A stretch of DNA of 64,000 nucleotides from Trichoplax adhaerens (GCF_000150275.1 NW_002060957.1:514348-578347), one strand, 5' to 3'; positions 20,351 through 59,900 are shown, counted from the first letter of the stretch. Notes: generated by a model from the sequence alone, not told the origin. Numbers and translations: made by a program.

Positions 20351-20574
20351 GTAGTATTGTTATGCAATGTGAAGACAAACTACGACATCTGTTAGACACC
20401 TCTAGGGAATGGAAACTGGACTGGGCAACTTCTCACTCCAATTCCATTTCTTGTCTTGCAGTTTTCTCTTGGACCATCGCAGTTTCAACTCGTTTTCAAC
20501 CTTAATAATGACGGTGCAATGTAGTCGGTGAATGTATCTTAATGGTACATACGATATGAGGTAGAGACGGGTAG

Positions 20575-21319
20575 TCAAAAAGCCTCTTGTACAACCAGCA
20601 ACTTGCAAAATGACGAGTGATGGCATGGAGCCATGGACTACTGCGATACTGTATCTAGTAGTCGAAGATCGACGATCTACTGTACACACAAGATGCAAAA
20701 CATTGCATAGCAGATATTCAAAAAGTCTCATGTGCAACCAGCAACTTGCAAAAAGACGAGTGATAGCATGGAGCCATGGACTACTGTGATACTGTATCTA
20801 GTAGTCGAAGATCGACGATCTACTTTACTATACTGTACACGCAAGATGCAAAACATTGCATAGCAGATATTCAAAAAGTCTCTTATACAACCAGCAAACT
20901 TGCAAAAAGACGAGTGATAGCATTGAGCCATGGACTACTGCGATACTGTATCTAGTAGTCGAAGATCGACGATCTACTGTACACACAAGATGCAAAACAT
21001 TGCATAGCAGATATTCAAAAAGTCTCATGTACAACCGGCAACTTGCAAAATGACGAGTGATAGCGTGGAGCCATGGACTACTGCGATACTGTATCTAGTA
21101 GTCGAAGATCGACGATCTACTTTACTATACTGTACACGCAAGATGCAAAACAGTGCATAGCAGATATTCAAAAAGTCTCTTGTACAACCAGCAAACTTGC
21201 AAAAAGACAAGTGATAGCATCGAGCCATGGACTACTGCGATACTTTATCTAGTAGTCGAAGATCGACGATCTACTGTACAGTGTACACACAAGATGCAAA
21301 ATAATGCATAGCAGATATT
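20575..21319. repeat. Tandem repeat, 5 units of 143/153/144/153/~151 bp with a ~297-bp higher-order dimer
   Basis: Units start at tcaaaaag (20575, 20718, 20871, 21015, 21168). Units 2 and 4 share a 10-bp insertion (tttactatac); units 3 and 5 share gcaaacttgc. Confidence 0.97.
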
Positions 21320-22272
21320 ATCGCGGAATCTGAAAGAAGTTTTGAAACATGCATAAAAAAGGAATTCAGTCTAACGATTGATTTATTAATGTAGGATTAG
21401 GGTAATGGAGGGCATAAGTAAGACTAATAATAGTATGAAGTGATAAAGAGCTGTGGTAATATTTGTCTCGGCAAATTGACTAGTTGAAGGCCTAAAATTG
21501 CTAAACTTGGACGTAGACCGGTGCCGAGTGCATGCATGTGTTCTAGCCCCATGCACGCTGATAATATCGCGTATCGCTATAATAAAACCGTTGGGAATGG
21601 ACTGCAATTGGATCGGCTGGCAATCAATGAATTGGATAGCTTTCTCGTATAATCCTTATTCTAGTTGAAATGCATTGATACGCATACATGCAATTATAGA
21701 AGTATGGTACTGTAAAGAGAAGCAAGTACATTAACATTCTACGCGTATTTCAAGTTTATACATATATAGTCATATACGTTGTAAGACGAAATCAGCTCAA
21801 TACAAACGCTAAAATAGAAGAACTGTTGAAAAAATGAAATAATCCAATGCGACGTTAGACTGCAAGTGATGATTAATAGCTGACTTTCGAGAACTGTTGC
21901 TTAAAATGTACTGGATAATGCATACGAAGTTCTAATGTACAATCTATTCAGTTTTGGCTCGGTATGCCTTAAAGTAGAAATAAGGCTTTCAGTAGATCAA
22001 ATGATAAAATCCACCACGATACCGATATCTGAACTTTGATAACTATTAATATATAATTAACACCGTATAAAAATTAAAGACATTGCGATATTTATAGCTA
22101 AATCTCGAAAAGCATACAAAAGCACATGGTTTCAAAATTGAAACAAACACTGGTTACAATTCTTTTTTTTCTAGTATCACAACTACAACAATGATAAAGC
22201 GAAGCTATTTTTTTAACGTTATTTCTAAGTTAAAATAGGAATTTGTCTTAATCAACCACGAAGTAAAGGCAT

Positions 22273-25200
22273 TTAAACACTGTTACTGTTGGTAATAAGG
22301 GACGGAAATAAGTAGGCGTAATTTAAATGCCCATCCGCTACGTTTTGTAGGTTGGTAGCAATTAGACTAGCTTCTAAAGTACTGGACTGAGCAGCAAAGC
22401 TGGTAACTAATGCTTGTGCTGGTGGGTCTTCAATGTCAGCTCCATAGTCAAGAAGGCTATCATGGCGTAATGTAGTTTGCAAATTTGCAAAATTTACTTG
22501 AGTCTGTAACAAGAAATTGAAAGGATGGTTTATCATATTCGTAACGTTAGTACGACTGCTACACATCAAAGTTTTATTGGTTACGCGTATAATCTCTTAC
22601 ATTCATTTAATCTTTATACTTACGATAGATTGCGAACCAGTAGGGAATCGTTCTGGCTGAAATCCAGCAACACCATCGACATCGTAATATTTTCCAGGCA
22701 TATTAGGCACAAAGGATGCATACTCAAGCAGAGGATAATTGACAGCCGCGTGCTGACCAGATGCAGTCCATAAAATCAAGTGGATGGCATTGATCAGTTG
22801 ACGTCTATTTTGAAACGCTGGAGGAAAATCTTTTATCTGTTCAATAAATTAAAACTGAAGTTGTTATTTAACGTAAAGGATAAAGCAAGAATTGAGCTTA
22901 TAACGAAAATGGGCGCCTATTTACCTTGCCATTTGCGGAGTTTGGAGTGCCTGTTGCCTCATTGGACAACTCATCAGCCCAGGCTTGTAATTCAAAATCG
23001 TTGACAACATCCGCATCGCTATCATAGTATCTAACAAACGAAGAATATTATTAGAATGGCATGAATAATTTCAGCAATATCATATTTGATAGCATATGAA
23101 TATACAAAATAGGATACATATACGAGTATTTAGCTAGCCCGTTAGACCTACAGAATCGTAACGTATTATTAAGAATTGATAAAATTGAACGAAAGTAGAC
23201 AACGATTGCCAATTAATTGGATAAGTACGTTATGGCGTATGAATTTTCTTAATTAATTTTAAAGCTACTATTAATCCTGAATTATTTTTAGTTAGCACTT
23301 TACTCAAAAATAAAATCATTAAACCAAAGATTTCGTCATTATCAAATTAACCGGTATATCAGTATGCTATGATAATTCACACTAGGCATCAATACATTAT
23401 ACCCGTATACATATTTATTAACATAGCACAAAGTGATAGTGTTATGAATTATAAATTTAAGAATATGAGAGAAGTATTGTACCATATACATCTTAAGTTG
23501 TAAAGTACTTTACGTATATATTAAGAACAGCATACTATAGCTAGTAAATAACTTACAATGAAATATATTGTTCCGTAAAGTCTCGTAACAGATCAAAGAC
23601 TTTCTTGCCGTCATCACGATATGGATAATAAGGTAAGATAGTTTCTGTTGCTGATTTATCAATTCCGTAAAGCCTGCAAAGCCGGCAGTGGCTATATTGT
23701 CATATTGGCCAAATTGAGGGATATGACTTAGCTCTACAAATTTGTTCAAGGTTAACGTGCCAACGCAATGACGGCGTAAAATTTGGCGTAACGGATGCTT
23801 TAAGGGCAAGTGTCGATTACCAACAACGCAGACTGGATCCATTAAGAATTGAGTTTTTAAGAGATGTTCAACAAGTTGACTGGAGACATATGTCGCTAAT
23901 TGAGCTCGAGTTTTAGCAATAGACCAGTTATCGCCATCAGCAGGGGTAAAAACTGAGGACGTTGGTGTGCTATCCATCTGAATTGCAACTGGCAGTAATT
24001 GACCATTATTGACATCGGGATTAGATACGAATATAGCAATTGGCGATGAGGTATTTTGCATTGTTCTATTATCAGTGGGTACTTCGTTGATGTCAGGTCC
24101 TTGCGGAAGTGCTCGTAATTCTGGAAATTGCATTACGAAGATACGACCATCTTCCAAAGCCTAATTTATTTTATGTTTACACAATTTACACAGTTATCAT
24201 CGATGACAATAATTATCCAAGGAAGCTCAATTATCACTACAATAACAGTAACATGATAAATTACTTTCTTACTTGATTTACAGTATTACCAAATGTTTGC
24301 GAATTCAATTTGGACTCAATAGCATTCTTCCAACCAAAATCAGGATTTAAGAAAGGTTTTAACTCAGAAACCTTAGTACCATCGAAAATAGCATCTAAGT
24401 AAGACCAAATGTTTATTTTTTGAGCATTATTAAAAGGAAATATTAAGAGATATCCATGTATGAAAGATATAGTACGGTATATCTTACAAGTATTATTCGC
24501 TCCGTGTGGCTCTATCAAGTATATTGTACAGGGTATATCAAAATGGAATTATTTATTTCTGTCTTACCTCTCTGACAAACAACTTTCCAGACAGGCTTAA
24601 AGCAGCTAGTATAAAACAAGCGCAAGCCATATCGCGAAAAACGAGCTGATAAGCACTTTCGGAAGTAGCTTGGTGTGTTGTAAGTATTTTCAACGGTAGT
24701 GCCATCCAGCCACTTACCATATTTTGCTCCCACATAGACACGTGAGTACCATGCTTTGAAGTACTTATTAACAAGTTTAGCTTCCGTAGGATCCGACAAT
24801 ATTGGTAAACGGCCATGATTACATTTGCACTTATATTGAGCAATATGCCAGTTTGTGTAATGATATGGACGAAAGGCTTTATAGCAATGTTTACCAATTA
24901 ATTTCCAACCCTGTGGACAAGCTACATGTACATACAAGATTTAATATTTTGGTTGCTTAATTCAAGTTACCATTACCGGTAATTAAGATCTGATTAGCAG
25001 ATCGGGTAATTTTGGAGAACGTGTTATTATTAACAAATTACTCATAAATAATGTGATTAAAGCTACTTCAACTTACATGATTTGAAAACTCTGGATAGCT
25101 GCAAGGGATGTAATCCTGCCAAACGCTGCTCTGCAAAGACTTTATCATCCGAGAAATTATCAATGATTAGATCACTAGGCATCGTGAGTTGATTTCCTAG

Positions 25201-28200
25201 TGCCTAAAGTAATGAATTTACAAAGCATGAATAGGTTTAGCTAAGTTTGCTATCAGTAAAAATTTCTTGATTGATAGTATGCTCTTAAAATAATTACATA
25301 GTATATGATTATACTAAAATATAGCATCCTATCAAAGTCGTTAAATCCAATTAGCTGACTTATCCATTTTTACCAATAAATTTCGTGGTGCAGCTAATTA
25401 CGATCACTGCATAAACTTATTTTAGCATGATAAATTATAACTCAGTATTATAGCAGTATACCATTGTATGTGATTATGACTAAGTCTAATAGTATCAGAA
25501 CTAATACCTATGTTGTTTCTTTATCTTTGCTTGCATTCAATTCACATTATATGATGCTTATGTACTTTATATTTCTGCATTGCATTTGTACTATCCTTCA
25601 CATAGGTTGCACTCTACTGTTGATTAGTACAACAGTAACTCACATTCCCAAATTACAGTTTGAGACTCAAAATTCTTTGAGTTTACCATTAATTCATTAC
25701 AGCCTGTCATCAATTGATTTCAAGATTTCAATCTTAGCTGTATACTAACTTAGATGAATTTAATCAACAAAAAAATAAAATTAAAATTAAATTAATAGCC
25801 TGATCGACACTCGAGGGCTTAGCCACACCCGAGATCATAATTCGAGGACAATTTAGTATGCTGATTATTTTGACGCATGCGTCCATTAAGCGGAAGGTAT
25901 ATTTCTTTTCACGATATAGTTCCGCAAATTTTCCTTTCTAGATATTATTTGCCAGCCGGACTAGAGATTTCTCCGCCTTTACCACTCCCATCTATTATTT
26001 AAAACTAATATTGAATGCGATCTGCTTTTCTTTTTTTTTTGTCACTTAATGAACAGTAAAAAGGATACGTCCGCGCATTGCAATCGATCGCTTAAAAATT
26101 GCAGAGCTATAATCACCTGGAATGATTTCAGCTAATTATGGCACAGTTGCCATGTATAAGGAATAAAGTGATAGTATGCAATGTAGAACTGTACGTCTTA
26201 ATAAAGTAACTATTGATTATAGCTCGTATGATGAAATGGCTCACCTACCCATATGAGCTATGTAAGGTCGTAGCTGATAGCCATACTAAGTATTATTGCT
26301 ATTTGAGCAATCTACTTTTAAGATTAATGACTCCTATACATTATCTAGACGAGGTATAGAATTGACGGAAAGGAAAAATTGCTAAATAGTACTTAAATTA
26401 AATTCAGAAATTAAATTAATCAAATCATTCTTAGCAAAGTGTGCCAATATTTTTTTATTACTATATCATCATTCAAATTTTCTTGGTTATTGTACAATTC
26501 AGCTAATGACGAACGTCACTGATCGTAACTAGTTGCTTAACCTATAATTTTTTTAGAAATATTTATTGAGTAGTGCTTATTTGCTGTTGCAAAGTATGGC
26601 GATGTCTTAAAAAGTCACGCAAAGAGTCAAAGGAGTAGGATGCAGCTGCCGTTAATATAGACAAAATTTCATTCCTCAAGGGATGTGTCCATTTCTGTGA
26701 TGCTAAAGCTTATACCTATTCTAGATGTGCAAATTGGCAAAGACTGACTAAAAATACTATTAGTCATAGGTCGCTAATTGCTGTACAAATTTTTTGAGGG
26801 ATCTTATTTTACATGGAGTGACTTTGCCAGTATGAGAATGCATGGATGCTAATAGTTTTTACTCTGTTAATCTTTCATATCAACAAAAACTTCCAATTAT
26901 ACTTTGCTATTAGCAATGCTGATATTGATTTGTTGATACACGTAATTATTAACTAAGCATAATATGGCCTAGTGTTGGCTTAATATTTACTTTCATAAAC
27001 ATAAAATATCTCAAATGCTATGATAAGGGTGGAGGAAGTAAAAGGCGGATTCGGATATTGTCGGTGAAATTCTCAATTAAATACTTTGCACCTACTTCCC
27101 GTAGTACTGAGGCTTACATTCTTTTAGAGTACCATGTACCAAATTGAGTCTATATATATAATGCATGGTAGGAAGTGCAGTACACTCAATGAAGAAACTG
27201 TTAATGTTATACTTCATATAGTCAAGATGTTTGTATCATTATAATATCTTTACAATAAATAGTAAAATATCCTTTCGCGTTAAGTTTAACATAACTTAGA
27301 TAAAACATTTGCTGCAAGTGAGGACTTGCAGTTATTGAAAGAAGACAATCAATGATTTATATAATTATTAATCTCATCTGAAATTCTGAGTCAGATACGC
27401 GAGTAAGATTAAATTTTAGAACGCTAACGTAATTATAAGCTAGTGCGTATATATATTTACGAAGAGAATTTTTATTAAGATCAAGGTTCAGTTCTATATC
27501 AAAAGCAATACAGTACATAAAGTGACTTACCAACTGCGCATCGTAAAAGAAGGAAAACAACGCCTTGTAGTCTTCAATAACGGTAAAGTCTCGAAGAGAA
27601 TTATTGCCAGTGGTAAGGAAAGTGGCCGCTAAGTTAGCACTGTCCTGTAACGTGAATTGATACGAAAAAAACCATGGATTTTCCAATGGATCACTAAATG
27701 CAACACCGAATGCTGTGCCTGGATCGGCATCCCATAGTGGTGGAATTAACACAGTTGGATCCCGCAGAGGATTATTAAAATCTGGTGTTTGACGTAATGC
27801 ATATATAGTTTGACTTTGGGCTAGTTCAGTTTGACGATCCGCTAAACATGCTGCACTAACGAATTGTGGTATATCGACTGGACAAGTATGGTTACTACGA
27901 GGCAATCCAACCAATTTATGATCCTTTTTAGATTCGATAAGTAAATCAGCTGTTTATAATTGTAGAGATAAAGAGCTATTATTAGATAAAAACACAGCAA
28001 ATTGGTCTTTGATACGATATTAACCAATTCGGAGATTGTTAACATAATATATTGTTTAAGTACCGTGATGAGTATACAACGAATACGAATATCAATATAT
28101 GATTAGCGCATCTCTATATATTCAACAGGTCTAGATAGGATAGAGCCATTTCTTCACTTTTTAATAGCATGATTGATTGTATAATCAGGGTCATTGCATA

Positions 28201-30378
28201 GTTACTGTAGTCACTTAAAATGAAACAATCAATTGGTTTTGCTATAGTCTGATACTATCTTAAATTTTATATTTATAAGGGTGAAACGTCAACATTGCAT
28301 AGAGTTTACTTATCTTATTTTAAGCAAGCAAACGATATTTTAACGATACTGCCGAGTTAGCTCGACGATGGATAAAATGTAATAGACTTTGCAAATTTGA
28401 TGTAATGATGTTTAGATAATTATCATACGCGCAAAGGAGAAGCCTTCTATTTTACTTCAGTCAAATTAAACGCTTAAGAAATATAGCATAAAGCATATAC
28501 ATATGAATTTATATAAATGAATTTATATATAATGGCCTGTAAAATCAATAATTATTAATATAAACACTGAAAAGGACAATAAAAATTAATTAAAGTAAAC
28601 GCTGAAGTTTCTAACTGACCTATTGGTCTATATTCTTGATCAGAAGAAGTCACATCACTTTTATTTTACAAGGATAATTTAAGAAATGAATTAGGTAACT
28701 AGCTCCAAGATCTATACATATAATAATTAATCTGATAATTTGATAAATGGATTATTTAGTTAGGGACCAATCGTAGCATTGAGAATGAAATCGATTGATG
28801 ATAACAAATAATTTATAGTCCATAATTTATTATAAATCGTATGTAATCATTAAGAACTTCTGTATCGCGTATATCGTCTTTAATATTATTTTTACTGATT
28901 CTGTTTAGTGTTGCAATTGAGATAAATCAAGATTGTTACAAAATTATGGAGGAGTCATGATCAACGTGAATATTTTAAGTAATGCTATGATTAAACTACA
29001 AATTATAGACAATAATCACTGCAATTAATTATTCCATTGCCGAAGCCTTGTAAGGATATTTATAAATCAAGTACTATGATTGTATAGTTGGCCAATATGG
29101 CATTCTACTTACTATTATCTTGGCTTTTGAAGAATTGGCTGTTAAAGAAGCAATCTGAATAAATTCCAACGCATAAACATGTTTCTGGTAAGATGCAGAA
29201 TTCACCTTTACCACAACTCTGACGGCAAACAGCTAAATAGATTGAAATTTTAGTTTTCTTAAATTTCTTGAATTAATACACATAAGGCGTTAAAATTTAG
29301 CGGTTTGGGAATTCTAAACTGCTAGCGATGACAAAGACTACTACATGCGTAGTGATAATGGAATGCTTTAAATTATTGACTTTTATAATCAAGATTAAAT
29401 CAACTATGAGTTAATATTATCCAAATTTTTATGAATTGTTATAAATGGCTTTTCTTTATACGATTAATCAGGTATAGAATGGACTGTAATGTACTGTACA
29501 TTAAATGCTCTATCATAAAGCAATAAGGTCCGCACCAGCTGTGTTCATGGCATAATAATATAAAGGTTCAGTTTTCGATTAATTTAAATTTTCTACTAGA
29601 TTAATTGCTAGTATGGTAACTGTTACAGAGTAAGTTAACTTTTCAAATAAGTTCACGTTTAATCCATGCTTCATATTCTATATAAGTCAAATAAATTATA
29701 GACAGCGCCATACAACTCCTTCACTATAGTTTTCTTGCACCGTTATCGTAACGTCTCTTATATTACTTTTTAATTTTACAACAACATTTTGCAACGAATC
29801 CCATAAATATTACATTGCAACTTAATACTACAATGTCTGGCAATGCATATATAATACACTAATTTACAGCAAATCGATCAACTACAACTATCCTGTATCA
29901 TATAGTCGGTACCGGATAAAGTGCAATTATGAGCTTGTGGCAATTTAAAGATCATAACGGTCACTTACAGAGTAAGATCATTACATGAGGTTAGCTAATT
30001 TATGAATAGTATCATGTCTTTGAAAAATTAACATATCGCATGCATTGCTATTCAAAGTGCATGAAATATCACTGCCTTGACATAATGACAAATATATTCT
30101 GTTTCTAAAACTACTTACGTGTAAAACAAGGATCTTCGCCATAAATTATTCCATTAGGCCTTGACCAACCTTCACAACATTGAGGATCTTTTTGATTTTT
30201 TATGCTTAAGTTCTTAATGATGCTATTTAGTCTTTGACCATCGCTGATTTAATTTTAAATGAGTAATTAAATAATCATAGGATACATAGGATCTGGCATA
30301 GTATCAAACTTAAAACACAGAAAAGATTTTTACCTCTCCACTTCGCAAACATTGTTATTGAGAAAGCCAGCGATGATA
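22273..30378 (-). pseudogene. Lipoxygenase paralog A (EMI/EGF - LOX with inserted C-type lectin domain); frameshifted in this sequence, 5' exon not located
   Basis: Exons ~30334-30378, 30119-30243, 29113-29232, 27531-27949, 25077-25203, 24568-24921 (CTLD), 24273-24394, 23557-24160 (two ancestral exons fused out of frame), 22925-23030, 22624-22836, 22273-22503. LOX motifs FAEQRLAGLHP, LLPVAIQ, WSIAK, EHLLKTQ, HPLRQILRRH, YPYRDDG (shifted frame), QHAAVNY, PNMP, NSNSV*. Confidence 0.8.
24568..24921 (-). other. C-type lectin-like domain exon of LOX paralog A (354 nt, phase 1-1)
   Basis: tgtag|CT TGT CCA ... CAG AGA G|gtaag. Translates as CPQGWKLIGKHCY...WHIAQYKCKC...VYVGA...KWLDGT...KCL...SCF...VVCQ. 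Confidence 0.92.
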
Positions 30379-38654: not shown

Positions 38655-41600
38655 TTAACTACTAATGCTATTTGGTACATTTTTTGGATGAAGGTACTTA
38701 TAGCTCAAATGGCCATTGGCAACATTGGCGTTATTTCTAGCCACTAAATTAGCTTGAATGGTATCAATGCGAGCCTTGAATTCGAAGACCAACTCTTCAG
38801 CATCGCTATCTGCCATGCTAGCTGCATAATCGAACAAACTATCGAAATGTAATGAAGCCAAGTTGAAGCCAACTTCTACATGAGTCTAGGATAGAAGAAA
38901 TAAATATTAGAGATAAATTTGTTATTGCGAAATATTAGTACTGGAAAGCTAATGAGGTAAAGTAAATGATGACCCTATAGTACTTTAGCTGTGGTTAATT
39001 ATTATTATCTTGTTCAAGAATGTAGAGTGTTACTAATTATAATTGTAATTATCCTGAAAAATTTAGTATCAAACCTTGTACTATTGTTTACAGTTAAACT
39101 CATAAAATTTGAAATTTTGCCGATATTGTTTGTCTACTAACGTCGCAGATTCTAATGATAAATGCTTATTGGATAATTATACTTACTAAAGATTGGGTCT
39201 TGGTTGGGAATTTTATTGGGTCAAATCCTGTTACACCGTCCACGTTATAAATTTTACCAGGCATATTAGGTAGAAAAGTGCCATATTCAATGACTGGAAA
39301 ATTAACTGCTGCATGTTGGCAAGAAGAAGACCAAACGAATTTATGCAATACATCGATGACTTGAGCTTTTGTAGTGAAAGATTGAGGGAAGTCGCGTAAC
39401 TACATATTTAAGCGAGACGATACCAGTTTAAGTAAGTAAGTAATGATAACGAATTATAGTTTTTTTGTAGTCTCTGAATACTATTAACATCAGTTCATAT
39501 ATTGCAATAAAGTTTAGCTTTAAAATACATAGCTCTAGGTGACTCAAAATGACACTGGATACAGTTATTACTCACTTTGCCTTTGCCTGAGTCTGGAGTA
39601 CCTGTAGCACCTAAAGCAATTTCGTTTGCCCAACGTTGCATTTCATGATCGGCAACTACAGTTGCATCATCTACATAATATCTGAGAAAATTAATTTGTA
39701 AAATTAGAATCGAAGGTTATTGTATTTGTTCCTCCAGGTCAGTTGTCTATTAAACTTACAGGTTAACGTAATCTCGTATAAAATCACCAATAGCTTTATA
39801 TAATTCTAGCCCATCATCTCGGTAAGGAAAGAAAGGAAGTGCTTGCTTATCCAATAATCCAGATTTCTAACTCATGATAAATATAATATATAGCGACTTA
39901 AATTAGTATATACTACAAAACGTTGTACTCAATTAATGGTAGACTGTTCAGTGATTCGATAATACAAATTTTTATATCATTATAAACTAGATATTGCTGC
40001 TTAAGTGCCCAGAAGGTGATGCTTTTAACCAAAGCTAGCAGAATCGTTGTCTTACTAAGCAATTACTACAAGCAGCTTCAGTTATAATTCTATTGCTTAA
40101 TATAACAGTTAGGTCAATTTTTTTCGGTAGTGAACGATAAGTACTTCAATATTTTGCGTTTAATATATTGTAGCACAAAATTTATTCAACTCGTTAAAAA
40201 ATAGTTAAGCTCAAACCTTTAATCGATAATTAGGGTCGTGATTATTAAATGACCAGGTATTAAATCCATTATTTATAACGTCATTTTGTCCCTTGAATCC
40301 AACAGTCAGGATTCTGTCCACTCTACCACCGAGTGGTATTAAGCTTAATTCGCCAACTTTATTCGTAGTCAATGTTCCTCTACAATGTTGGCGAATAAGT
40401 TGGCCCACAGGATGTGTTATTGGTATATTTCGTTTACCTGATACACATAAGGGATCGTTGACTAGATGAGTATGCAATAAATGTTCTAATAATTCAGCGG
40501 TAGTAAAAGCGGACATTTGAACTAAAATTTTAGCAATGGTCCAGTTATCGCCATCATCTGGTGTATATACTGGCGAATTTTGAGTACTATTGATCTGAAT
40601 AGCAACAGGCAAAAATTCTCCATGGTTGACGTCCGGATTTGAAACAAAGATTGCAATTGGCGACATTAAAGTCATCATAGTTCTACCATCATTTGGTATT
40701 TCTTCAAAATCGGGGCTGGTTCTTATTCCTCTAAGCTCAGGAAATTCTGATACGTATACCCTACCATCTTGCACAGCCTTAAAAGTATAAAAAACAGCAA
40801 ATTATAATTATGCGCAAGCATACAATTGAGATTTAGATAGAACTGATAGGGAAATACAGTAATCTTTATTTACTTACATCAACAAAGGTATTACTATAAT
40901 AAGGCGAATTAGAAGCCAGTTTGGATCGAATTGCTTTCTTCCACTTGAATGATGGGTTTAGAACGGATTTTAAGGTTGAGATCTTAACGCCATTTAAATT
41001 AGCAGCTACAGATGATACATAAAAATATTAATAGAATCCAATCATGCTATCAAAAATCATTGAGAAATAGCATGATACCAAAATAGCCCTTATTTTTATA
41101 TCAAGTAGTCACCTTTTTGACATAATATTTTTCTCAAAGGCCAGAAACAGAAACTGTATCTTAATTTTAAGCCAGATTGAGTAAATCCAGCTGTTAAACA
41201 TCGACGGAATGCACTAGGTTGATTGCTGGCACCCACAACTGGAGTGCCATCGGGCCATGTACCGTTACCGCCGTCAACATAAACGGGGACAGAAGCAAAT
41301 TTATATCGCTTATTTACTTTAGCGGCTTCCTGTGAATCCGATAGATCTGCTAGATGGCTGATATGGCATTCGCAGACATGTTTTGCAGCATTAAAATTGC
41401 TGTAAGGGTATCCACGGAACATTCTATAGCAATTCTCTCCAATTAACGTCCATCCTCGTGGACAAGCTAAAGAAGAACAGACATTGCTTTAAAATTGATC
41501 GTGCTCAAGGCTAACTGAAAATAATTGAAAGGCTAATATTATTGTAGTAAGGCCCAAACTATACTTTAAATGAAAATTCTACTAACTACCAATACTTTGG

Positions 41601-44600
41601 TTAATGTAAAGAATGTTTTTGGTTATATATCAGGCAGTATACCGAATCTATACAGTCACCTAAAGAAGATCAAGAAAGCATGATACTTACGCTTGCCGAT
41701 AACGCGCTTCACGGGGAATGGATTTAATCCGGCAATTTGCTGCTCTGCAAATACACGATCATCTTGCCACATATCAATAATTAAATCATTGATATTAGTT
41801 GGGACATTTCCTTGGTCCTACGTATGTGAGAAAAGCATTACAAGAATTGATTCTCAATCGATAGAAAACATTACAATCATTGTCTATTATCAAGTGAGAA
41901 TGTCGTAAAGGTTCCCCATTTTAATACTGATATTAGAGATTACTTCTATACACTTACCACATGAAACATATAGAAGAAGAAAAATAATTCTCGCCAATCT
42001 GAAATACTAGAAAATTCCCGGACAGAATTATTTCCTAGACTTAAGTAAGTCTGGACTAATTGTCCGTTGGTTCCCAATATAAAAAAGTATTGATTTAACC
42101 AAGGTGCTTCAAAGGGGTCACTGGCTCCAACACCAAAAGCCGTTGGTGGATCGATGTCCCATAATGGAGTAAGTAATACATCTAAATCACGACCAGAGTC
42201 ATTAAAATTAGGCGTAGTACGGATTTTATAAATAACACGATTAGTAGCTAATTCTGTTTGGCGCTGGATGGTACAGTTGGGGCTAGCATTTTGCGGCAAT
42301 GCTACTGGACAGGTTTGGCTAGTCGATCTTTTGCTATGTTGTTCAGCATCGCGATCGAATAAATTATTGTCAAAATTTTCTTCACTTCCAACGTCGATAT
42401 CCGCTGCCCAACGTGTGAATTGATCAAAAGGCGATCCTAAAGTTTCAATAAATTCAAGGAAAATTTTGCAGAATGAAAAGTTGATGCAATCCGTCTTGAA
42501 TTATGATACTCTCTATCTGATCTAAAAATCATGATCTCTGCATCTATATCCGTTCGTTATAGTAAATGAAATATGACTGATATCGCCGCAATACTTAAAT
42601 TAACAATTACTGACTTTTGTACCTAACGTAGTCTAAATTTAGATAAGATGAATTATGGAAGCATCATACTAGAAAATAGTAGAGATGGAATATGAATTAA
42701 GAGTGCAAGTTACTTTTTTTTCCATTCGTCGCATTATAAGTTGTTGATTGACATCCTCTATAGCCCAAGACGCATAAGCACTTATCTGGCTTATAACAAG
42801 ATTCCTTATTGCCACAGGGTACCTTGCAAGTTGCTAATTATAGAATAAATGAATCAATAAATGACTAATGAATTGAGCACATTATTTTAGAATCATTAAG
42901 CAAGTAAATTTCAAGCTATTGAGATTTTTGATCGCAAAACTGAGACTAGAAATAGTCCTACGCAAACAAAAATGGTGGAAAGGATTGAATCATGAGTGTT
43001 AAAAGTTGAGGTAGATTATATTACAGTTACGCTTAATTAGACGAAATTACACATAAATCATCTATTTTATCTTAAATACCATAGCTTACAGGAAAAAGGA
43101 GATCGCAATCAATACGATACAGAAATTTAACGCTGCACAAGATTGTCTATTTTAAGGCTACGCTTTTGATTGGTAATTGAATTTTAGAAGTACAAAAATT
43201 TTGCACTATTGAGACTGAAATTCACTGCAGAGTTTAGTCATCTATTTTCTTCCGGATTATTGTACAAAGTGTGAGCACCGCATACTATTGCACTTACGAA
43301 TAAAGCAAGGTGCATTTCCTTCTCGATTACCGCCGGCCCTTGTCCAGCCATCGCAGCATCGAAATTTTGTAGCCCTAGCAATATAGTCTTCCTCATCAAA
43401 GAATCGGTCGCTGATGCTATGGTAAGCTCGCCTAAAATAAATTTTCAAAGTATGACATTTATATTACTTTCTATTATTAATTCAATGCCAATCAATATCA
43501 CGAATTTCGCGTATTATTTCCCACTCCACTAAAAGTAATTATAAATACTTGGCAAACTGTAAGCTTAAATAAATCTCGATATTAGGATTGAGCTCAGCCT
43601 ATATGTACTATAGAATGGAAGTTTAAACTCTGAGATATTATCGAAGGTATTCAATACTAAATCATATCTGTGTCATGATAAAGGTAAGAATAAGTTGGCC
43701 AATTTTTCACAGGATCCTATTACAACATACGATTTGACTTTTGCTAAGTGTAATATTATAATTAGCATGTTACTCACACTGTAACGCTGTAATATTTATT
43801 TCTTCTTAGTCTAAACTGTAATTATTGTAGTGGTTATCTACCTAAAACTGAACTTACTGCTTGAGCACATTTCAGTAAATGATCACTTTTGTTTCACTAA
43901 TGATCAATACTACCACAGTTATTACCGCATTCATTGCTACCGCTTATCGATGTCTAATCTTAATTATACCGGAAGCTGTCCAGTTTACTACTGCCATTAA
44001 AACTAGATACATCTAACTTTGCAAAATCTGCGATCCAATTTACTGATTAACCTGCCAATAGAATGTATTTTAATCATGATTGATTAAATACTAGAACAAG
44101 ATATTTTACAATATCATTAGTACTATACCACTGTGCAATCAACTCTTGCGACAATTTTAGCCCCTTTTCTATACAGATAAAAGTAAATAATTTGGAATGG
44201 TGGTTTACCAGTTTGACGCCCATGCTAATAAATTTAGTTTAGCCAGCATACAATGGAATTATTTACATGGATAGTGTAATACGTTAAATTTTAGGTAATG
44301 TATGCACATATTTAGTGAATTTTATGGCATTTACCGGTATTAATGCATGTTGTAAACTAATTACGATCGATAATAATCGATACCAGCGCGGTATAATATC
44401 CGCATATGCTAGTTATAATTAGAATTATCCATTAAATTGTTTTCAAATTTTAATAATACTAAGATTAATAACAGTAAAATTATAATTATTAACTTTTATA
44501 CGAAGAAAATCAAGAAGAACATTAAAGCTAACATCAAAATGGTTGATAGCTTCAGTTGAAAACTTACTTGGCAGTATAAGAGCAGACATTGACATTGACG

Positions 44601-44658
44601 GAACCACTACTGTTAAGACAATGAATAAATAGATGCTATTATTTAACATTTCCATCAT
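38655..44658 (-). CDS. Lipoxygenase paralog B: predicted secreted EMI/EGF - LOX with inserted C-type lectin domain, ~890 aa
   Basis: Exons 44568-44658 (signal-peptide-like), probable micro-exon 44209-44224, 43298-43431, 42714-42833, 41958-42436, 41691-41817, 41113-41466 (CTLD), 40878-41005, 40217-40777, 39760-39866, 39576-39681, 39187-39399, 38655-38885. From 43431 to the stop all sites are GT-AG and in frame. Motifs WQDDRVFAEQQIAGLNP, FLPVAIQ, WTIAK, EHLLHTH, HPVGQLIRQH, FPYRDDG, QHAAVNF, PNMP, PNSISS*. The two 5'-most exons are less certain. Confidence 0.9.
41113..41466 (-). other. C-type lectin-like domain exon of LOX paralog B (354 nt, phase 1-1)
   Basis: tttag|CT TGT CCA ... CAA AAA G|gtgac. 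Translates as CPRGWTLIGENCY...FNAAKHVCEC...VYVDG...TWPDGT...RCL...FCF...ILCQ. Confidence 0.92.
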
Positions 44659-45212: not shown

Positions 45213-47449
45213 TCCGCAATCCATATTACTTTTCAAATTATCGTGTTTTCCATTTTATTTTGCTGATACGTCCTTAATTAGCGGTTTTAAAATTTCAGCT
45301 GTATCATGACGCTGCAGCAATTAAGTGAACAATAATACACGGATTTAAGCTATGCTTTAATAATTTTAACCACTTTCTACAGTTGGCTTTAGTAGTAGTT
45401 TTAGAGTTCATTCCACGTACTTGACGACTGATCTTGATTTGATTCATTACAATTTAATGTGTTCTAGAATAATACTTATGTATCATTTACTACAAATTGA
45501 TGATAGTTATTATTTCGAAGTATTGTTTGAAATAAATTATGAATAATGATCTTGTATCATTTAAAGTAATTGGATGATAACTGTTGTTCCAAATTGTTTT
45601 TTGAACGCGTTATACAATAATAATTATGAATTATTGAAATCATAAATGCAATGACTGCTGTTTCCAAATGTTGTTTATGCACATTAGGGAAAAATGAAGA
45701 TAACGGTATAGACAATCATAACATTCTATGCATAATCTAAATTTAGTTATAATTATTCTCGCATCGCGGTAAATGATGGAGTAAGTTAAAAATAATCTTA
45801 ATAGATTAATATGAATCGACAATATATGGAAATATTATGTTATGAATAAATAATGTTAATTTGTTTCCATGATTTATAAAGGTGTTGTGATTTCAGCTAA
45901 TTATAGTATTATTGTGTTTTGAAAATGTAATATCGATATGTAGTAATCACTATGTAGTAGAGAATAATCGTTTATGCTTAATAAAGCAACTGTGGATGAT
46001 AGGGGTTAAAACCATTCATTAAAGAAATTAAAGGAATTCTAGATGACAGGGTTAAAACCTTTCATTACAGAAAATTTTATTGTTATAACTTATGCTCGAT
46101 GTAATTTCAATTTAAAATAATGTACTGGTAATTCGATGATGTCTAGAAATACCTTGATGCGATGTAATAAATCCAAATCAATAGCACTGATTCAAGCTAA
46201 GGATAGTAAAAATCTCTGAACTAATAAATTAAGTAAACTTTTCGACTATGTCTAATTTGCACAAAATAATTTGCATTAAAAGTTTTAATTGCGATCGATA
46301 GATAAAACATTTATCTTTCGATTTCTCTTCTCTGGTCGGAGTTATTACTTTGAGCTTTTGATCATTACATAAGATCAATTAGTTCACAATTAGAATGTGA
46401 TATTTATTATCATTAATTACTCATAAGAATTGGTTTTAATCACAAATGATCTCAATTAAAAAAAATTTACTGGTCTATATTAGTCCAGTTTGACATGATT
46501 GTCATTTGCAAAAAAGTTATCTAGTAGTGATTTAAAATCTTATTTATTGCCTTCAGACTCAAGTTGGCTTTGATCAAGTACGATACCTATCTAATCAGAC
46601 TTGATATAATCTGGCTTTTTAGACATTAAATGATATTAATTGGATGCATTTTACTATCATTTCCTTATCTGGTATGAAATATCCAATTACAACTTCTACT
46701 ATATTTAGTGGGCAAATAAAAAAATGGTAGTTCCGTATGCTATCCATATCAATACCTAGCTATAACTTCTACCTTTTTAGCTATCAATAAAGCTATTTAT
46801 ATTCGATTTATTCACTGGCCTAATAAAAAATAGGATAATTCTGTATGCTATCCTTGACAGTAGCTAAATATAAATTAGATGATTATTATATAATCGAGAG
46901 GCCAATTATACGCTGCTTTGATTTCATTTTGAAGACTACCTCATTTCTGTTTTATTGTCTGCTTTTACCAACAAAATTATCTTTTAGCCATAATATAGTC
47001 ATCTTTCAATAAAAGTTACTGTTATTTGGAACTGTGTTAACTTTAAAATTACCTTTTGTGTAAAAATTGGTTAGTTAAGAAGGTATAAAAATAGGATAGC
47101 ATCTTAAATGCTATCGCTAGTTGTTATCATCGTGATAATTTCTAATCAAACTTTCATCCAGATTCGAGTTCTTTTTATTTGCTGTTATTTTCCTACTAAT
47201 TTCTGCTTTCGTTATAATATTAAGGTGCAATTTTAAAATAAACTAGACCACAATTTTGCTTTGGTGTTAACCACAGCTACATGTATTAAGTGATTAGACT
47301 AAAGACGCTTCTAAAATGGGGCTATTAACCTGGCTACAACAAATAAGAACAATCATACTAATATAACCAGATCGATCTTTCTAAGTAGACAATTTGATAC
47401 TGTATAGTAGACTTTACCTTTGGGAAGCAGTGGCTAAGGCTACTAAGAG

Positions 47450-50400
47450 TAGAAAGTATCCAAGATTCATGTTATCCGTTATTTTCTCGCTGAGTGCTTG
47501 CTATGATGACCAATCACCCGGTCGTTGTGGAACAACGCAGAGGATGTTTATGAAAATGACAGTGGTTAGATCCTGTATTTATAGTGGTAGATGAAAATCA
47601 GCGTAATTTATTATCGCCTCTAAGGGCATTGATGTACGGAAGTTTACTTTACGCTATTTCTTCATTATCATCAATAATTCATAATATTGACATTTAATTG
47701 TTATTCCGATCTGTCAGCAATGATTTGTATTCTTGATATCTTAATAATTCATTTTAAGATTCAATTTGATGAAAAATTATCTTGATCAATTTCTCAGAAT
47801 TAATGACAAAGTTGGTCTTCCTATGCTGGCAAAATGTTTTACCTTCTTTTTTCGCATTTTAAGTTCATTGCTACATATTATATAACTTTGGAAGCTGTAA
47901 TTAAGGTGCAGATAATTGGCAGTAGCCTATTTTGATTTCTTCCTGTGTTTCTGTATGATTTGAATGACTATTCTTTATCTAATGCATATTATTAGCTTAT
48001 TATCGTTATGATTTCTTCAATAGTCTGATCATGACGGCTTGCTTGCGTCCTCAGATGGATTCTGCTTTAATTATAAATTAGAATCTGGATGGATTAATTG
48101 TAGCTCAGTCAATATTGCATTGGGGTTGTCAAGCGGATGCAAAAATGAAAATTTAAATAAAAAAATCCTCCTGGTCTTTCATTTAGCGTGTAAGAATAAG
48201 TAGAGTCTGACCTTTAAGCTTTGTGGCGATTTAATTGCTATGCTAAGCTAATCGTAAATATTTCTTGACGACATCATAGGTGTGATATTCATCTGACGAA
48301 TATCGTAAAAGGAATCCAATATAGCAAATAAATAGAATAGAAATCTCTTCATATCGTGTTGTCCCTACAAAGAATATTAGGTATACAATTTTAATCGAAT
48401 GAATAGTAAACAAAGCCTCGCTTGTGTGCTATACCGCTTAGGCTTTGATGGTAAGGAATTGCAACAGATTCATGCGACTTATTATATATCATTATGCATT
48501 ATCTTGAACAATTAATGCCAAATATAAAAAGATTGCAAGTATATTAATACTTATTCTGATTTTGTAAAATCTCATATATAAAGTAATTAACTTCATGTGA
48601 GTAAAATTTAAAATCTGTTTAGGTGTTGGAGTGTGAGCTAAGATGTATAAGAATTTTAAACTAAAAGTTAGTTATCTCGCTTCAGTAGTTAAAATCGCTG
48701 ATTATCTAGATTTAAAATAGTTGTTATTCCGGACAGTAGGCCATTCATTAATAATTTACCAGATAACATTGTTACTTAGCTACTAATAAAGGATTCAGGC
48801 AGTAGCTCACAGTTAATCTACTCCTAGTAATAAATCACATTTCCAATAACTTCGATCAAGGATTGCTTTATTAATCGCATCTGCGATCGTTATTTATTTA
48901 AAATATTACTATGCAAACGTCGTGGCATCGGTGATTATTTCTTTAGGATCTTGGTAAATGAATAAACATGTTTATTTCTGTAGCAGAAATAAATGAAGTG
49001 GCAATAAGTGAAAAAATGAATATTATAATAAAATTTAGTGTTAGTGAGCAGCTATAAGTTATTAAGTAGAGAAGTATATTTTTGCTTAAAATAGATTCAT
49101 TGGTACTTGTCTAAGTACTCTGGTTCTACTCAATGAATTATTCGGAAAATCGAATTAGTTTAGAATAGATAAAATAGCATTTGAGTATTGAAGATTATTC
49201 CTGCAGGTATTTTATATTTTGATTGTGTAATAGATCAAACTATGTGAGTAAGCTACAATTTGTTACCATAGATATCACAATATAAGTGTAAATAATGAAT
49301 AAATCTGTTAGAAATAGCTTAAAATGCTATTCCAATCTGATATTGGCCTAAACTTCTGGAGATGTAATCGGTGGATTACATTAAGATCTGTCATGAGCCT
49401 AAGGCCTCGATCGATGTTGACAATTTTATCCAGATATACGTGCTATTACAACAATTACTTTAAGTAAAGAAAGAGAATATTGTCTCATAAAACGAAATTA
49501 TAATTAAAATGTAGAAAGCATGTGAAAATATTATCTCATACATCTAAATTATAATCGAAGTTCAATCAGAATATGAAATTCATAAGTATTTAGTATAAGT
49601 CAGGGTGCAATTTAATACCAGTTTGATTGATCAAAGTTTTTGCTGTAATTTGTCTTGCTAATACTGCTATAAGTCATAACTTAGAACAGCTCTTTCATAC
49701 GCAGTCAACTTAAAGATATTTCGTCTACTTATAATTACACATAATATCTAATTTATGTGATGTCAAGATTATTCTAGTTGATAATAGAGAAAAATTGTAT
49801 GATCTATAATTAATTACTGTCTAGCGATCCGATAACATAAATATCTAGTTTTTTTGGTTCCTATGCATAGAAGTTCGATTTTGCAGTCTGTTATCATGAA
49901 TTGTATAGATCAAGATCCACAATTTTTTATTAATTCGATAATCTCCCTTTCTTTTCGATGCATACGTGTTTGTGCATATTGCTTTTACGATAATATTGCT
50001 AAATTTTAACTACGGACTGATTTGAGACTGCTAAATTGACGATAGTTGACTTTAGAAAACACAATTCTATTCAGAGGATCAATTTTCTCGTCTCTTTCCT
50101 CTCTTTTTCTATGTATTGTCATAAATTAGATATAAGTTAATTTTTCGATATTGTACCAAGAAACAGGGAGATAAGAAAATAATTTATCCATTTTTGTTTC
50201 TATTTCTGTTACATTCGTACTTACGTTGATCGGTTATACTAACGAATATCTTGCTTAATAGTGCCAAACTAACTCAATACCGTATGATACTGTCGCAATT
50301 AGAATCCAAGATAGAAATATCTTAAGAAATTTTTATCTCTTTTTGGGCTAATTATTGTTTTCATTTACAGATAAATCTGCTTATTTCTTCGATAAGTGGC

Positions 50401-56912: not shown

Positions 56913-59900
56913 TTAACGCCAACTTAGATTTTGCTGTGCATTCAACTGTCCAGGAGTGTTCGCGTAGATGTTGCCTTGCTGTTGCACAGGAAAATTACCG
57001 TACTGTTGTGAAGTTTGTCCAGTCATGTTTCTTGCAGACGAATCACTTGGCGAAGATTGAGCTGAAAGTAAGAACAGTATCATTTCATTAAAGGGTTTCT
57101 AGTTTCATATAAAACATATACCACACATTTTCATCATCAATATAGATTAGTATATTACGAGTGAATACTTCAAAACGTTGGATAGATACCTACCTTCCTG
57201 TACAAATTTACTGGCATAGGCAAATACTGCTTCATAGCACATGATGTATTGATCCTAGTAATAAAGTATATAATTTGGTTGATTACAACAAACTACAAAT
57301 GGACATCTTTAATTCGTTCTTTTTTCTAGGCGAGATAATAACACATGTAACACGTTGACATCAACATACTCTGATCATATACCTTAGTTCGAACCATGTA
57401 ATTTCGACGTTGGCGAAGGGATTGAATCAGCTTTGAAATATTTACTATGCAGCAATAATTTAATAGGTCATTAAAACCTAGATTCAGATACTAAAAATGC
57501 TACATTAGCAATAACACATCGCATACTTAATCCATGTCCGCCTGCCATTTCTTTGATAGCAGTGTAAAGGATACAGAATGCTCCTGTTCTTCCAACTCCA
57601 TCACTGTAAGAGGACACAAAATTAATCTTCGACTAATCTATTATTATGAGAAGAAGCTGTATATGCCGCTCTTACCTGCAATGCACCACAACAGGCGCTT
57701 GCGATCCAGGGTCGATCTTTTGTAGGTGAGATGTGACGTCTTCTAAATAGGCCATGAGTGGCTTGTACGATGTTTGATTGCTACAATAGAATAAATATAA
57801 GAAGTGAATAAGCTTTTATTAAACTCCATGAAATAGCGTATTTTGTATTTTACTTACAACGGCTGAGGCCACGTAATCAGTTGTAACTGAGTTATTGACC
57901 TACTTTCGGTATTCTAGTAGTAAAGCAATAAGTGTAGGTTATTTTAACAATCAGCTAATTAAATAAAATATTATGGTATAGTATCTTGCTCTACTTCAAA
58001 ATTATAAGAACCTTTTTAATGGTTATTATCCTCTTGAATCCATAAGGTTGAGCTTCTTGGCTTGCTAAAGTTACAACAATAGCACCGTAGGTAACTGATG
58101 ATCCTACATTTTCCGGCCAATAGCGATCGCACACACGCTAGCGTAAGTGATTAAACGCACATATTAATACAGTATAGAAGGTAACTGAAGGTGTCATTTT
58201 TTGTAGAACTCTACCTTGCAGTTTTCAATTTCAGCTACTAACATAGCAATAAATAATGCATTTGTTTCCCAAATCATACGCCAGAAATCAGTAAAGGATG
58301 ACGGCAAGGGAGGTTGTGTAGCAATATATCGTGATGATAACGTAGTTAAATCATCAATCAAGCTCGAGTTTATATATCCTTCATCGCCTTCATATTGCGG
58401 GCTCAATATTACTCGGGAATAATCATCTAACGTCAATAATAAGCATAATTGCGTTTTAGTTATCAAATTAGTATCGTAGCTTCAGACAATGTTTAATATT
58501 CTTCTTACAAGGTAGAATAGTTTCATCGCGATTGCCAATTGGATGCCGGTGAGCTACGTTACAAGGGTATTTGCGAGAGTCCGTAACACGGCTCTCTTCT
58601 AGAGCCTGTATGTAAGAAATATTCATCGTAAGTCAGCCATGAAATGAAAACTACAAGAATATAATTTTATTTTTATTCAAAACGCAAATCTAAAACCTGA
58701 AACTCAGTAGTGAAACCGTCACAGTTCTGTTGGGCACTGTAGCATAAAGACTGCATGTTTTGACCAAACTGCATTGTATCAGAGCGTAATTTATCTATGT
58801 ACTCTCTGGAGAAACTTTGAAGAAGTGGCTTCTGCTGAGTTGGAGCAGCTGGTTTACTACCCGCTATCACAGGCGATAAAATAGTGCTCCCGGATGTTCC
58901 TTGCAAATTAAATTGATCTACGCTTGAGGTAAGTAAATCAACGGGCTGATTATTGTTTTTCGCCTGATATAACCGTGGTGGAAATTGCTGATTCTGCACC
59001 GGTTGAAGAATTTGAGGCTTTTGTTGTTGTGCTGGGGGTGCTCCATTGTATTGTCCCTGCTGTAAAACAGATTCGTTTGAATTATTTCATAAATTGTATA
59101 CATATTTGCTAACAAATTTATTTTTCGGTTACCTCATGAAGTTGCCTAGAATTTGCCTGCGACATGTTTGCATTGTATGGCCTAACTGGTCCCTGTTGAT
59201 TGACTTGCTGCAGTGGAGTAAACTGCTGTTGTTGTTGCTGCTTGGCAGTACTGATTCCACCTTGTACTTGGCTGTTGCCATACATATTTTGACCTTGCGA
59301 ATTTGTTTGATTATACATATTCATGCTTTGTCCACCTTGCTGAGTGTTAAGCATTTGCTGCATTACAGGATTAGAATGAACATAGACAGTGCTCTGCGCA
59401 GTTGATTTAGCCGATTGTGAAGGAAGATTATTTACCATAGAAGGATTATTATTTACCGTTACGTACGAAGTTTGCGTAGTAGGTCGAGGCCCCATTTGTT
59501 GCTGTAGTGGCTGAGCACTCATAAAACCAGTCGGACCTTGATTTTGGCTCTGCTGTTGTAGACTAGGCTGCTGCTGATTACTGCATATCCAAGCGGTATT
59601 ATCACCAGCTGGTTTAGAAGACTGATTTACTATCCCTTCATTTCGCCTTATGTTGAAAGAGCTATTTGATGGGATATTTCCTTGAGAGAAAGTGCCGGGA
59701 TGCTGATGTTGAGACACCGCTTGTCCTGCACTGCTTTGCGATTGAATAGTATGTGCTTGTTGATTTTGGGGCCTTGATAAGACCTGTGTCGGCTGCTGAG
59801 CTGACTGAGACGACGGAAGTTGTGGCTGGTAAGTCGGGTAGCCAGAAAACTTCTGATCTAATCCTTGATTCGAAAATTGATTTTGTAAGGCAGTAGTTGA

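Follow-up and report, generated by a model that had tools for sequence, protein, structure and literature searches.

Introduction

Animal lipoxygenases (LOXs) are treated as cytosolic enzymes, which consist of a PLAT domain and a catalytic domain and make signalling lipids. The coral 11R-LOX and the 8R-LOX domain of the coral allene oxide synthase (AOS)-LOX bear an N-terminal PLAT domain, possess no signal peptide and end in Ile. The bacterial LoxA and the fungal manganese LOX are known to work outside the cytosol. This paper addresses a LOX gene of the placozoan Trichoplax adhaerens, here named gene B, which is found together with its tandem paralog, gene A, in a stretch of 64,000 nucleotides (GCF_000150275.1 NW_002060957.1:514348-578347). 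This whole stretch is referred to as the window, and all positions are counted from its first letter. Gene B occupies the minus strand from 47470 to 38655 and carries a C-type lectin-like domain (CTLD) within the catalytic domain of the enzyme that it encodes.

We consider it likely that gene B encodes a secreted-type LOX active on polyunsaturated lipids, composed of a signal peptide, an EMI/EGF head and a PLAT-less catalytic domain, with the CTLD placed in the loop after the motif G.NP..V.RV and serving as a binding module. We will present the evidence for the nested domain, its fold, the enzyme around it and its conservation, and will then weigh the alternatives and compare the gene with its closest known counterparts.

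A Lectin-like Exon within the Lipoxygenase Reading Frame

The CTLD is encoded by exon 7 of gene B (41113-41466, minus strand), which is 354 nt long (118 codons, residues 319-436), is bounded by AG and GT (..ttctttag before, gtgact after) and lies in phase 1 at both ends. It follows exon 6 (41691-41817, minus), a LOX exon that bears the motif W.DD.VFAEQ.IAGLNP..V.RV, matches residues 96-127 of the Cyanothece LOX 5med in the PDB (E 9e-4) and ends ...AGLNPFPVKRVIGK in phase 1. The next exon downstream, exon 8 (40878-41005, minus), adds 43 residues of a linker segment (..NGVKISTLKSVLNPSFKW..), common to a clade of cnidarian LOXs as judged by a motif alignment with three of them (P0151, P0154 and P0013). 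The LOX core is resumed by exon 9 (40217-40777, minus), starting with AVQDGRVYV. Paralog A contains an equivalent CTLD exon (24568-24921, minus; 354 nt, Pfam 22.9 bits) of the same length, boundaries and phase. An earlier note on this DNA had described a 354-nt phase 1-1 exon in both paralogs, and this was confirmed, with the joints of the gene B copy also seen in transcripts.

Transcript evidence was drawn from assembled Logan contigs, rather than raw reads, of four runs from four studies (X4, X7, X8 and X10), which were compared with positions 38659-44658; such contigs drop rare variants, so that minor isoforms are hidden. The same twelve joints occur in each of the four runs, with CT..AC ends that represent GT..AG on the minus strand, and the whole gene B mRNA is spanned by single contigs of 2764-2813 nt. 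The joints on both sides of the CTLD exon, 41466>41691 and 41005>41113, which are the junctions 41691>41466 and 41113>41005 named by the earlier note in the direction of transcription, are carried by contigs of all four runs. That note had also raised a lectin-less LOX mRNA made by skipping the exon, and its joint, 41691>41005, was present in no contig of the four runs, a source that loses rare variants. Within the reach of the contigs, the LOX transcript includes the CTLD exon constitutively, and the domain lies in frame inside the LOX catalytic domain, as one mRNA with one reading frame.

An assignment of the CTLD exon to a separate nested gene, or its dismissal as a mis-modelled artefact, was considered and rejected as practically negligible. 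In four studies, the exon is linked within single contigs to the LOX exons that flank it, and the arrangement and the frame are kept in a diverged relative.

Relative to other LOXs, exon 6 ends at residue 127 and exon 9 starts at residue 153 of 5med, with a corresponding gap of about 269 to 294 in the 5-LOX chain 3o8y. Gene B possesses 161 residues (118 from the CTLD exon and 43 from exon 8) where other LOXs have about 25. G.NP and the His motif are about 268 residues apart in gene B, whereas in 85 representatives the median is 132 and the 95th percentile 160; a scan of this spacing flagged only P0013, a coral LOX bearing a fibronectin type II (fn2) domain, as a true insertion. Because this spacing and the gaps in 5med and 3o8y are far shorter in other LOXs, the CTLD represents a true insertion. 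In human 5-LOX, this segment presumably carries the surface phosphorylation site Ser271, a location that would fit a solvent-exposed insertion site.

Fold and Sugar-Binding Residues of the Nested Domain

Homology, family and fold searches were run exon by exon, and the joined exons served for the reading-frame check alone. A relative, another organism, was represented by two genomic contigs of a Logan assembly (run SRR30664517), one with the orthologue of gene B (L002) and the other with that of gene A (L001). Exon 7 of gene B matches Pfam Lectin_C (PF00059) over profile positions 4-106 of 107, with 17.4 bits, below the cut-off of 22.6. The L002 domain likewise falls below it (14.8 bits), and those of paralog A (22.9) and L001 (27.5) lie above. 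A two-sequence profile of A and B matched 90 PDB sequences at E<=1. CTLDs make up all 60 of those listed, the lowest E being 1.2e-7, and the alignment to KLRG1 is full-length. In the ESM Atlas, 28 of the 30 neighbours of exon 7 belong to Lectin_C clusters.

The structural evidence points to the same fold. An AlphaFold2 (AF2) model of exon 7 was made from a seven-sequence alignment, three rows of which are canonical CTLDs from the same genome, and shows CTLD topology with a predicted local distance difference test (pLDDT) value of 80.8. With this model as query, Foldseek gave at least 348 matches in the PDB at E<=0.001, every listed one of which is a CTLD, with template modelling (TM) scores of 0.64-0.74. 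The long-form framework (C0-C0', C1-C4, C2-C3) is represented by six Cys, accompanied by one extra Cys that is invariant in the four sequences. The profile search, the AF2 model, Foldseek and the Cys framework together uphold the description of the exon as a complete long-form CTLD.

The lectin (glycan-binding) activity implied by the earlier note is doubtful in gene B, where the WND position reads RYS and the EPN/QPD position reads QPS; VYVD stands for WIGL. In the L002 domain, QPD is present and WND is absent. Judged by these residues, exon 7 is probably a CTLD but not a Ca-dependent lectin.

The Catalytic Core and the Predicted Secretory Head

The catalytic domain starts in exon 5 (41958-42436, minus) with C.V.LPQ....C, and this exon matches residues 112-211 of the Nematostella LOX P0151 by BLASTP (E 9e-11). 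Pfam Lipoxygenase (PF00305) is matched by exon 9 with 51 bits and by exon 12 (39187-39399, minus) with 29.6 bits, at a cut-off of 23.6. Exon 9 matches 54 PDB LOX sequences at E<=0.001, the best being the coral 11R-LOX 3vf1 (E 1.4e-22). All four side-chain metal ligands are kept in gene B, as H-x4-H on the two helix His of exon 9 (EHLLHTH) and as H-x3-N in exon 12, which supplies the third His and the Asn (QHAAVNF). Between them lie exon 10 (39760-39866, minus; ..PFFPYRDDG..) and exon 11 (39576-39681, minus), both placed by contig joints and frame. Exon 13 (38655-38885, minus), placed by joints, frame and motif, encodes the C-terminus ..PNSISS and the stop, so that the last residue is Ser and not Ile. 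The orthologue L002 ends ..NSIST where gene B ends ..NSISS, and the canonical C-terminal Ile is found in neither. The iron ligand of LOXs at this site is the terminal carboxylate, not a side chain. A Thr/Ser C-terminus may thus be read as a variant with the terminal carboxylate retained, and not as proof of inactivity.

In full, gene B consists of 13 exons with 884 codons in a single open frame, and the frame check on the joined exons found GT-AG at every intron. The start was corrected. The earlier note had begun the gene at an ATG at 44658, which is intronic, lying in intron 1, as transcripts run from 44609 over a 2.8-kb intron to exon 1 (47418-47470, minus). In runs X7, X8 and X10, contigs stop matching at 44611, and their remaining 5' letters map uniquely in the window, at 47420-47447. 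Read directly, this exon contains an ATG at 47470, then MNLGYFLLLVALATASQ, with a GT donor after 47418. Its coding part consists of the ATG and a predicted signal peptide (MNLGYFLLLVALATA|SQ), in which a hydrophobic core and an A-x-A cleavage motif can be read. About 105 nt before the ATG, upstream of exon 1, there is a promoter-like box TATAAATA (47576-47583, minus), also read directly.

The predicted signal peptide is followed by the modules of a Cys-rich head. Exon 2 (44568-44609, minus) is placed by its joint (43430/1>44567/8), the contig end at 44611 and the frame, and begins the EMI-like head with VCSY. Exon 3 (43298-43431, minus; contig joints) holds an EMI-like segment with a CCDGW motif; its F.CC.GW pattern aligns with residues 91-97 of P0151, within the weak Pfam EMI match of that protein. 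Exon 4 (42714-42833, minus; contig joints) encodes an EGF-like module, recognized by its count of six Cys and by a weak Pfam match to EGF_PEAR1L (E 0.041). The N-terminal 116 residues are thereby made up of the predicted signal peptide and Cys-rich EMI-like and EGF-like modules, and the mature product would contain 22 Cys and eight N-x-S/T sequons. No PLAT domain was matched by Pfam on any exon upstream of the catalytic domain, and the control relative P0040 does show PLAT. Pfam also found no catalase-related AOS domain on the upstream exons of gene B. Of the proposal that the LOX is secreted, the signal peptide stands as a prediction from sequence, and its location does not, as it sits on exon 47470-47418 and not on the first exon of the earlier model. 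Secretion is therefore still the predicted fate of the product after the correction of the gene model, on a better signal peptide.

Two minor transcript signals were seen in the introns of this region. Within intron 3 (43008-43083), one low-depth X8 contig contains a 74-nt skip with plus-strand GT..AG ends, possibly from a minor transcript that is antisense or spliced independently. In X4, a metatranscriptome, low-depth contigs (about 16, against 500-570 on exons) extend over the introns in 42437-44566 and could represent unspliced RNA or DNA carry-over.

Conservation in Both Paralogs and in a Relative

The genome contains only two copies of this type of CTLD, those of A and B, among four LOX loci in total. 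The other two loci, on contig C1412, are conventional, end ..PNSISI and bear no insert. An isolated 26-codon fragment closely similar to the C-terminal strand region of the gene B CTLD (..SGLKLKY..CFW.LRKILC..) occurs elsewhere (G000:C1409:4850180-4850257, in L007:1501-1578), and may be the relic of a partial copy.

In the relative, L002 covers exons 6-13 of B, with 73-91% amino-acid identity, and L001 covers exons 3-13 of A. Each contig is collinear with its counterpart in the window and contains a 354-nt CTLD exon with identical AG|CT..AG|GT boundaries. The ratio of nonsynonymous to synonymous substitution rates (dN/dS) of the CTLD exon is 0.135 for B versus L002 and 0.11 for A versus L001, at a dS of 1.3-1.5, which is saturated; for the LOX exons, it is 0.02-0.09. 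The introns show no more similarity to those of the relative than shuffled sequence does. Low dN/dS together with unalike introns indicates that selection has preserved the CTLD in both paralogs across a deep divergence, and purifying selection would thus be what maintains it in A and B.

The body of paralog A (22276-29230, minus), traced by tblastn with the exons of B, contains homologues of exons 4-13 in collinear order. The CTLD exons of the two paralogs are 47% identical, align without gaps and share all seven Cys. In A, the second iron-ligand His has been replaced by Gln (HLLKTQ; window 23651-24160). Because the same HLLKTQ is found in the orthologue of the relative (L001:5406-5966), the change is old and has been maintained in A, which has a dN/dS of about 0.07-0.11. 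The C-terminal residue is Val in A and Ala in L001. At 23559-23700, the homology of A to exon 9 ends at residue 170, and a segment resembling exon 10 begins 12 nt before this point in a different frame (23663 versus 23651). The exon 9/10 junction of A thus appears to differ from that of B, perhaps through a splice-site shift, an intron loss or a frameshift.

The Cnidarian-Placozoan Clade and Its Shared Intron Position

A HMMER search over 1.84 billion representatives gave only three matches below 1e-30, and the nearest named relatives are cnidarian, from Nematostella, Exaiptasia, Actinia, Acropora and Sanderia. These relatives possess signal-peptide-like N-termini and EMI or EGF matches, no PLAT, and the same C.V.LPQ....C start of the catalytic domain. 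The C-termini of the clade are Thr or Ser, not the near-universal Ile of LOXs, with A (Val) and L001 (Ala) as exceptions. A CTLD profile searched by hmmsearch against the 150 best LOX representatives gave nothing better than E 0.8.

A different module was found at the same place in stony corals. The Montipora protein P0013 carries an fn2 domain exactly at the position of the Trichoplax CTLD, and a search from it recovered LOX proteins with fn2 in Montipora, Porites, Oculina and Desmophyllum, as well as in transcriptomes. The predicted isoforms of Montipora foliosa have 744, 684 and 631 residues, which correspond to two, one and no fn2 modules in the loop, and the coral modules may serve as cassette exons. 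In the genomic DNA of Oculina (L010; protein P0218), each of the two fn2 exons is of phase 1-1, and the exon after them begins in phase 1. In the genomic DNA of Nematostella (L009), an empty phase-1 intron lies in the same loop, at KVTGDH|E|SNGVKW. Additionally, LOX is accompanied by six or more fn2-like Cys motifs in a predicted protein of Montipora capricornis (P0198, 950 aa); longer arrays of modules may occupy the slot there, or the model may fuse neighbouring genes.

In a quick maximum-likelihood tree of the exon-9 region, the four CTLD-bearing LOXs form one clade (support 96), made up of the pairs B with L002 and A with L001 (99 each), and this clade lies inside a cnidarian-placozoan clade (99). 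Every sequence bearing fn2 falls inside a separate scleractinian subclade (99). The tree therefore indicates that the CTLD was gained once, before the duplication into A and B, and that fn2 was gained independently at the same intron. The exon-shuffled origin put forward in the earlier note is well supported by the symmetric phase 1-1 exon, the empty phase-1 intron of Nematostella and the phase 1-1 fn2 exons of corals.

Interpretation and Alternatives

In the reading we favour, a symmetric phase 1-1 exon would have brought the CTLD into a phase-1 intron that was already there when placozoans and cnidarians diverged. The acquisition would precede the duplication into A and B, and would have been followed by retention under purifying selection in both copies. 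The enzyme would be secreted or kept in secretory granules, and would still oxygenate polyunsaturated lipids. The nested CTLD may dock the enzyme to membranes or targets in place of the missing PLAT domain and so bring the active site to a substrate outside the cell, such as mucus, matrix, or the membranes of prey or microbes. This docking would probably not proceed by classical Ca-dependent sugar binding. A broader proposal can be attached to it, which we advance tentatively and at somewhat less than even chances. The phase-1 intron of the loop, predating the split of placozoans and cnidarians, may act as a plug-in slot for exchangeable binding modules of extracellular type, filled by a CTLD in placozoans and by one or two fn2 modules in stony corals, within an unrecognised clade of secreted LOXs (no PLAT, an EMI/EGF head, a Thr/Ser C-terminus) that oxidise lipids outside the cell.

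Several observations weigh against the favoured account. The CTLD of gene B itself scores under the curated Pfam cut-off, and the three canonical CTLD rows in its alignment may pull the AF2 model toward that fold. The domain is a CTLD without WND, without WIGL and, in B, without EPN/QPD. The C-terminal residue of gene B appears as Ser instead of the canonical Ile, and the dioxygenase activity of the clade is assumed. Finally, paralog A has lost an iron-ligand His yet keeps its CTLD, and the value of the module may not depend on catalysis.

Some of these points feed other explanations, of which one places the nested CTLD in the architecture of the protein itself, as an oligomerisation or regulatory element, either a lid on the active site or a snaclec-like dimerisation surface, and not as a targeting module. 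Foldseek ranks loop-swapped dimeric CTLDs of snakes, such as rhodocytin and rhodocetin, highest; confidence in the AF2 model is lowest in the long-loop region (pLDDT 53-68), an unpaired seventh Cys (C.C) is conserved in the four sequences, and the missing sugar-binding residues would suit a regulatory domain too. The fn2 module is a classical matrix- or collagen-binding module, and its occurrence in the same slot in corals fits interchangeable binding modules better than a specific lid, so we hold a regulatory CTLD to be unlikely. A frequently skipped cassette exon, with the lectin-less LOX as the main product, agrees with the symmetry of the exon, whose skipping preserves the frame, and with coral RefSeq isoform sets that have two, one or no fn2 modules at the same site. 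Yet every transcript contig in the four runs includes the CTLD exon and none contains the 41691>41005 joint, a result in which minor isoforms would be hidden, and we regard this as very unlikely.

A further alternative concerns the chemistry, as the members of the clade may not be conventional dioxygenases, but may transform hydroperoxides, or may bind lipids in the secretory pathway without catalysis. A C-terminus other than Ile is found throughout the clade, A and L001 share HLLKTQ even as A stays under purifying selection, and the literature search found no assayed member of the clade. However, gene B retains all four side-chain ligands, the role of the C-terminus in binding iron belongs to its carboxylate by established structural knowledge of LOXs, and the core LOX exons are held at the low dN/dS given above (0.02-0.09). 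A departure from dioxygenase chemistry is thus improbable in our judgement, and an active secreted LOX with a CTLD as its binding module remains the reading that we prefer.

Gene B is an expressed, selectively maintained animal LOX that, judged by sequence, is built for the secretory pathway and holds a putative binding domain inside its catalytic domain. The use of the same intron twice, by a CTLD here and by fn2 in corals, is an unusually clean natural case of exon shuffling into the core of an enzyme. If the enzyme is active, extracellular lipid peroxidation could be a tool of feeding, defence or matrix in early-branching animals. Should the slot reading hold, lipids could be oxidised on prey or microbial membranes in the external digestion of placozoans, and in the matrix of corals. 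The loop may also offer a tolerated insertion site for the engineering of targeted lipoxygenases.

Other Features of the Window

The DNA of the window is eukaryotic and AT-rich, and its introns are short. Immediately downstream of paralog A, at 20400-21400, a unit of about 300 bp is repeated several times head to tail, with a GC content above the surroundings, and translated strings (..RLFEYLLCNVLHL..DRRSSTTRYSIAVVHGS..) recur there in the six-frame read-out. An intronless open reading frame (ORF) of 348 codons (4165-5211, plus) resembles a seven-helix receptor by eye only. A second ORF, of 533 codons (59118-60719, minus), is rich in Gln, Ser and Pro, lies in a region of higher GC and looks like a low-complexity protein or exon.

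Comparison with Known Systems

The literature search found no account of a nested CTLD or fn2 in a LOX, nor of the putatively secreted clade. The uniqueness that the earlier note had suggested is accordingly sustained for published accounts, as no describing paper was found, and not for databases, as coral RefSeq predictions hold fn2-nested LOXs at the same site. The CTLD version was found only in this lineage, and for the coral fn2 versions the only records are automatic RefSeq predictions. Eight lipoxygenases have been reported in the proteome of the coral skeletal organic matrix (bioRxiv 10.64898/2026.03.24.713908), where it is not stated which LOXs or domains they are; this gives indirect support to coral LOXs that are possibly extracellular.

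Among solved structures, the core of gene B is best matched by the coral 11R-LOX of Gersemia fruticosa (3vf1, E 1.4e-22) and the 8R-LOX domain of the Plexaura AOS-LOX (2fnq, 3fg1, 3dy5; E 1.6e-17). Their iron-ligand motifs are the same as those of B, but neither carries a nested domain, and the AOS fusion is end-to-end. The LoxA of Pseudomonas aeruginosa (4g32, 5ir4; E 2e-11) and the fungal manganese LOX (5fno; E 5e-5) are PLAT-less homologues like gene B; unlike it, they are bacterial and fungal, with no cysteine-rich animal extracellular modules and no nested domain.

For the inserted module, the nearest counterparts are CTLDs without a Ca/sugar site, including KLRG1 (3ff7) of the NK-receptor type, the oxidised low-density lipoprotein (LDL) receptor LOX-1/OLR1 (1yxj) and the snaclecs of snake venoms. 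These share the fold and the long-form Cys framework with exon 7, and are likewise without the canonical sugar-binding residues. They are, however, free-standing or terminal in receptors and toxins, whereas that of gene B lies inside an enzyme.

The closest full-length homologues are the Nematostella vectensis LOX XP_048584002.1 (P0151), with 39% identity over exon 9, and related PLAT-less LOXs of sea anemones and corals. Like gene B, P0151 has an EMI-like head with CC.GW, the C.V.LPQ start and a phase-1 intron in the same loop, and its C-terminus is Thr; its intron is empty, in contrast, and no domain is nested there. The scleractinian RefSeq predictions named 'polyunsaturated fatty acid 5-lipoxygenase-like' (Montipora capricornis XP_068716666.1, which is P0013; Montipora foliosa, Porites lutea and Oculina patagonica) belong to the same LOX clade. 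They resemble gene B in their signal-peptide-like N-termini, the lack of PLAT, the Thr/Ser C-terminus and a phase 1-1 insert in the same loop by way of the same phase-1 intron. They differ from it in the module, which is fn2 in one or two copies (some predicted isoforms being without it), in its independent insertion, and in being automatic predictions only.

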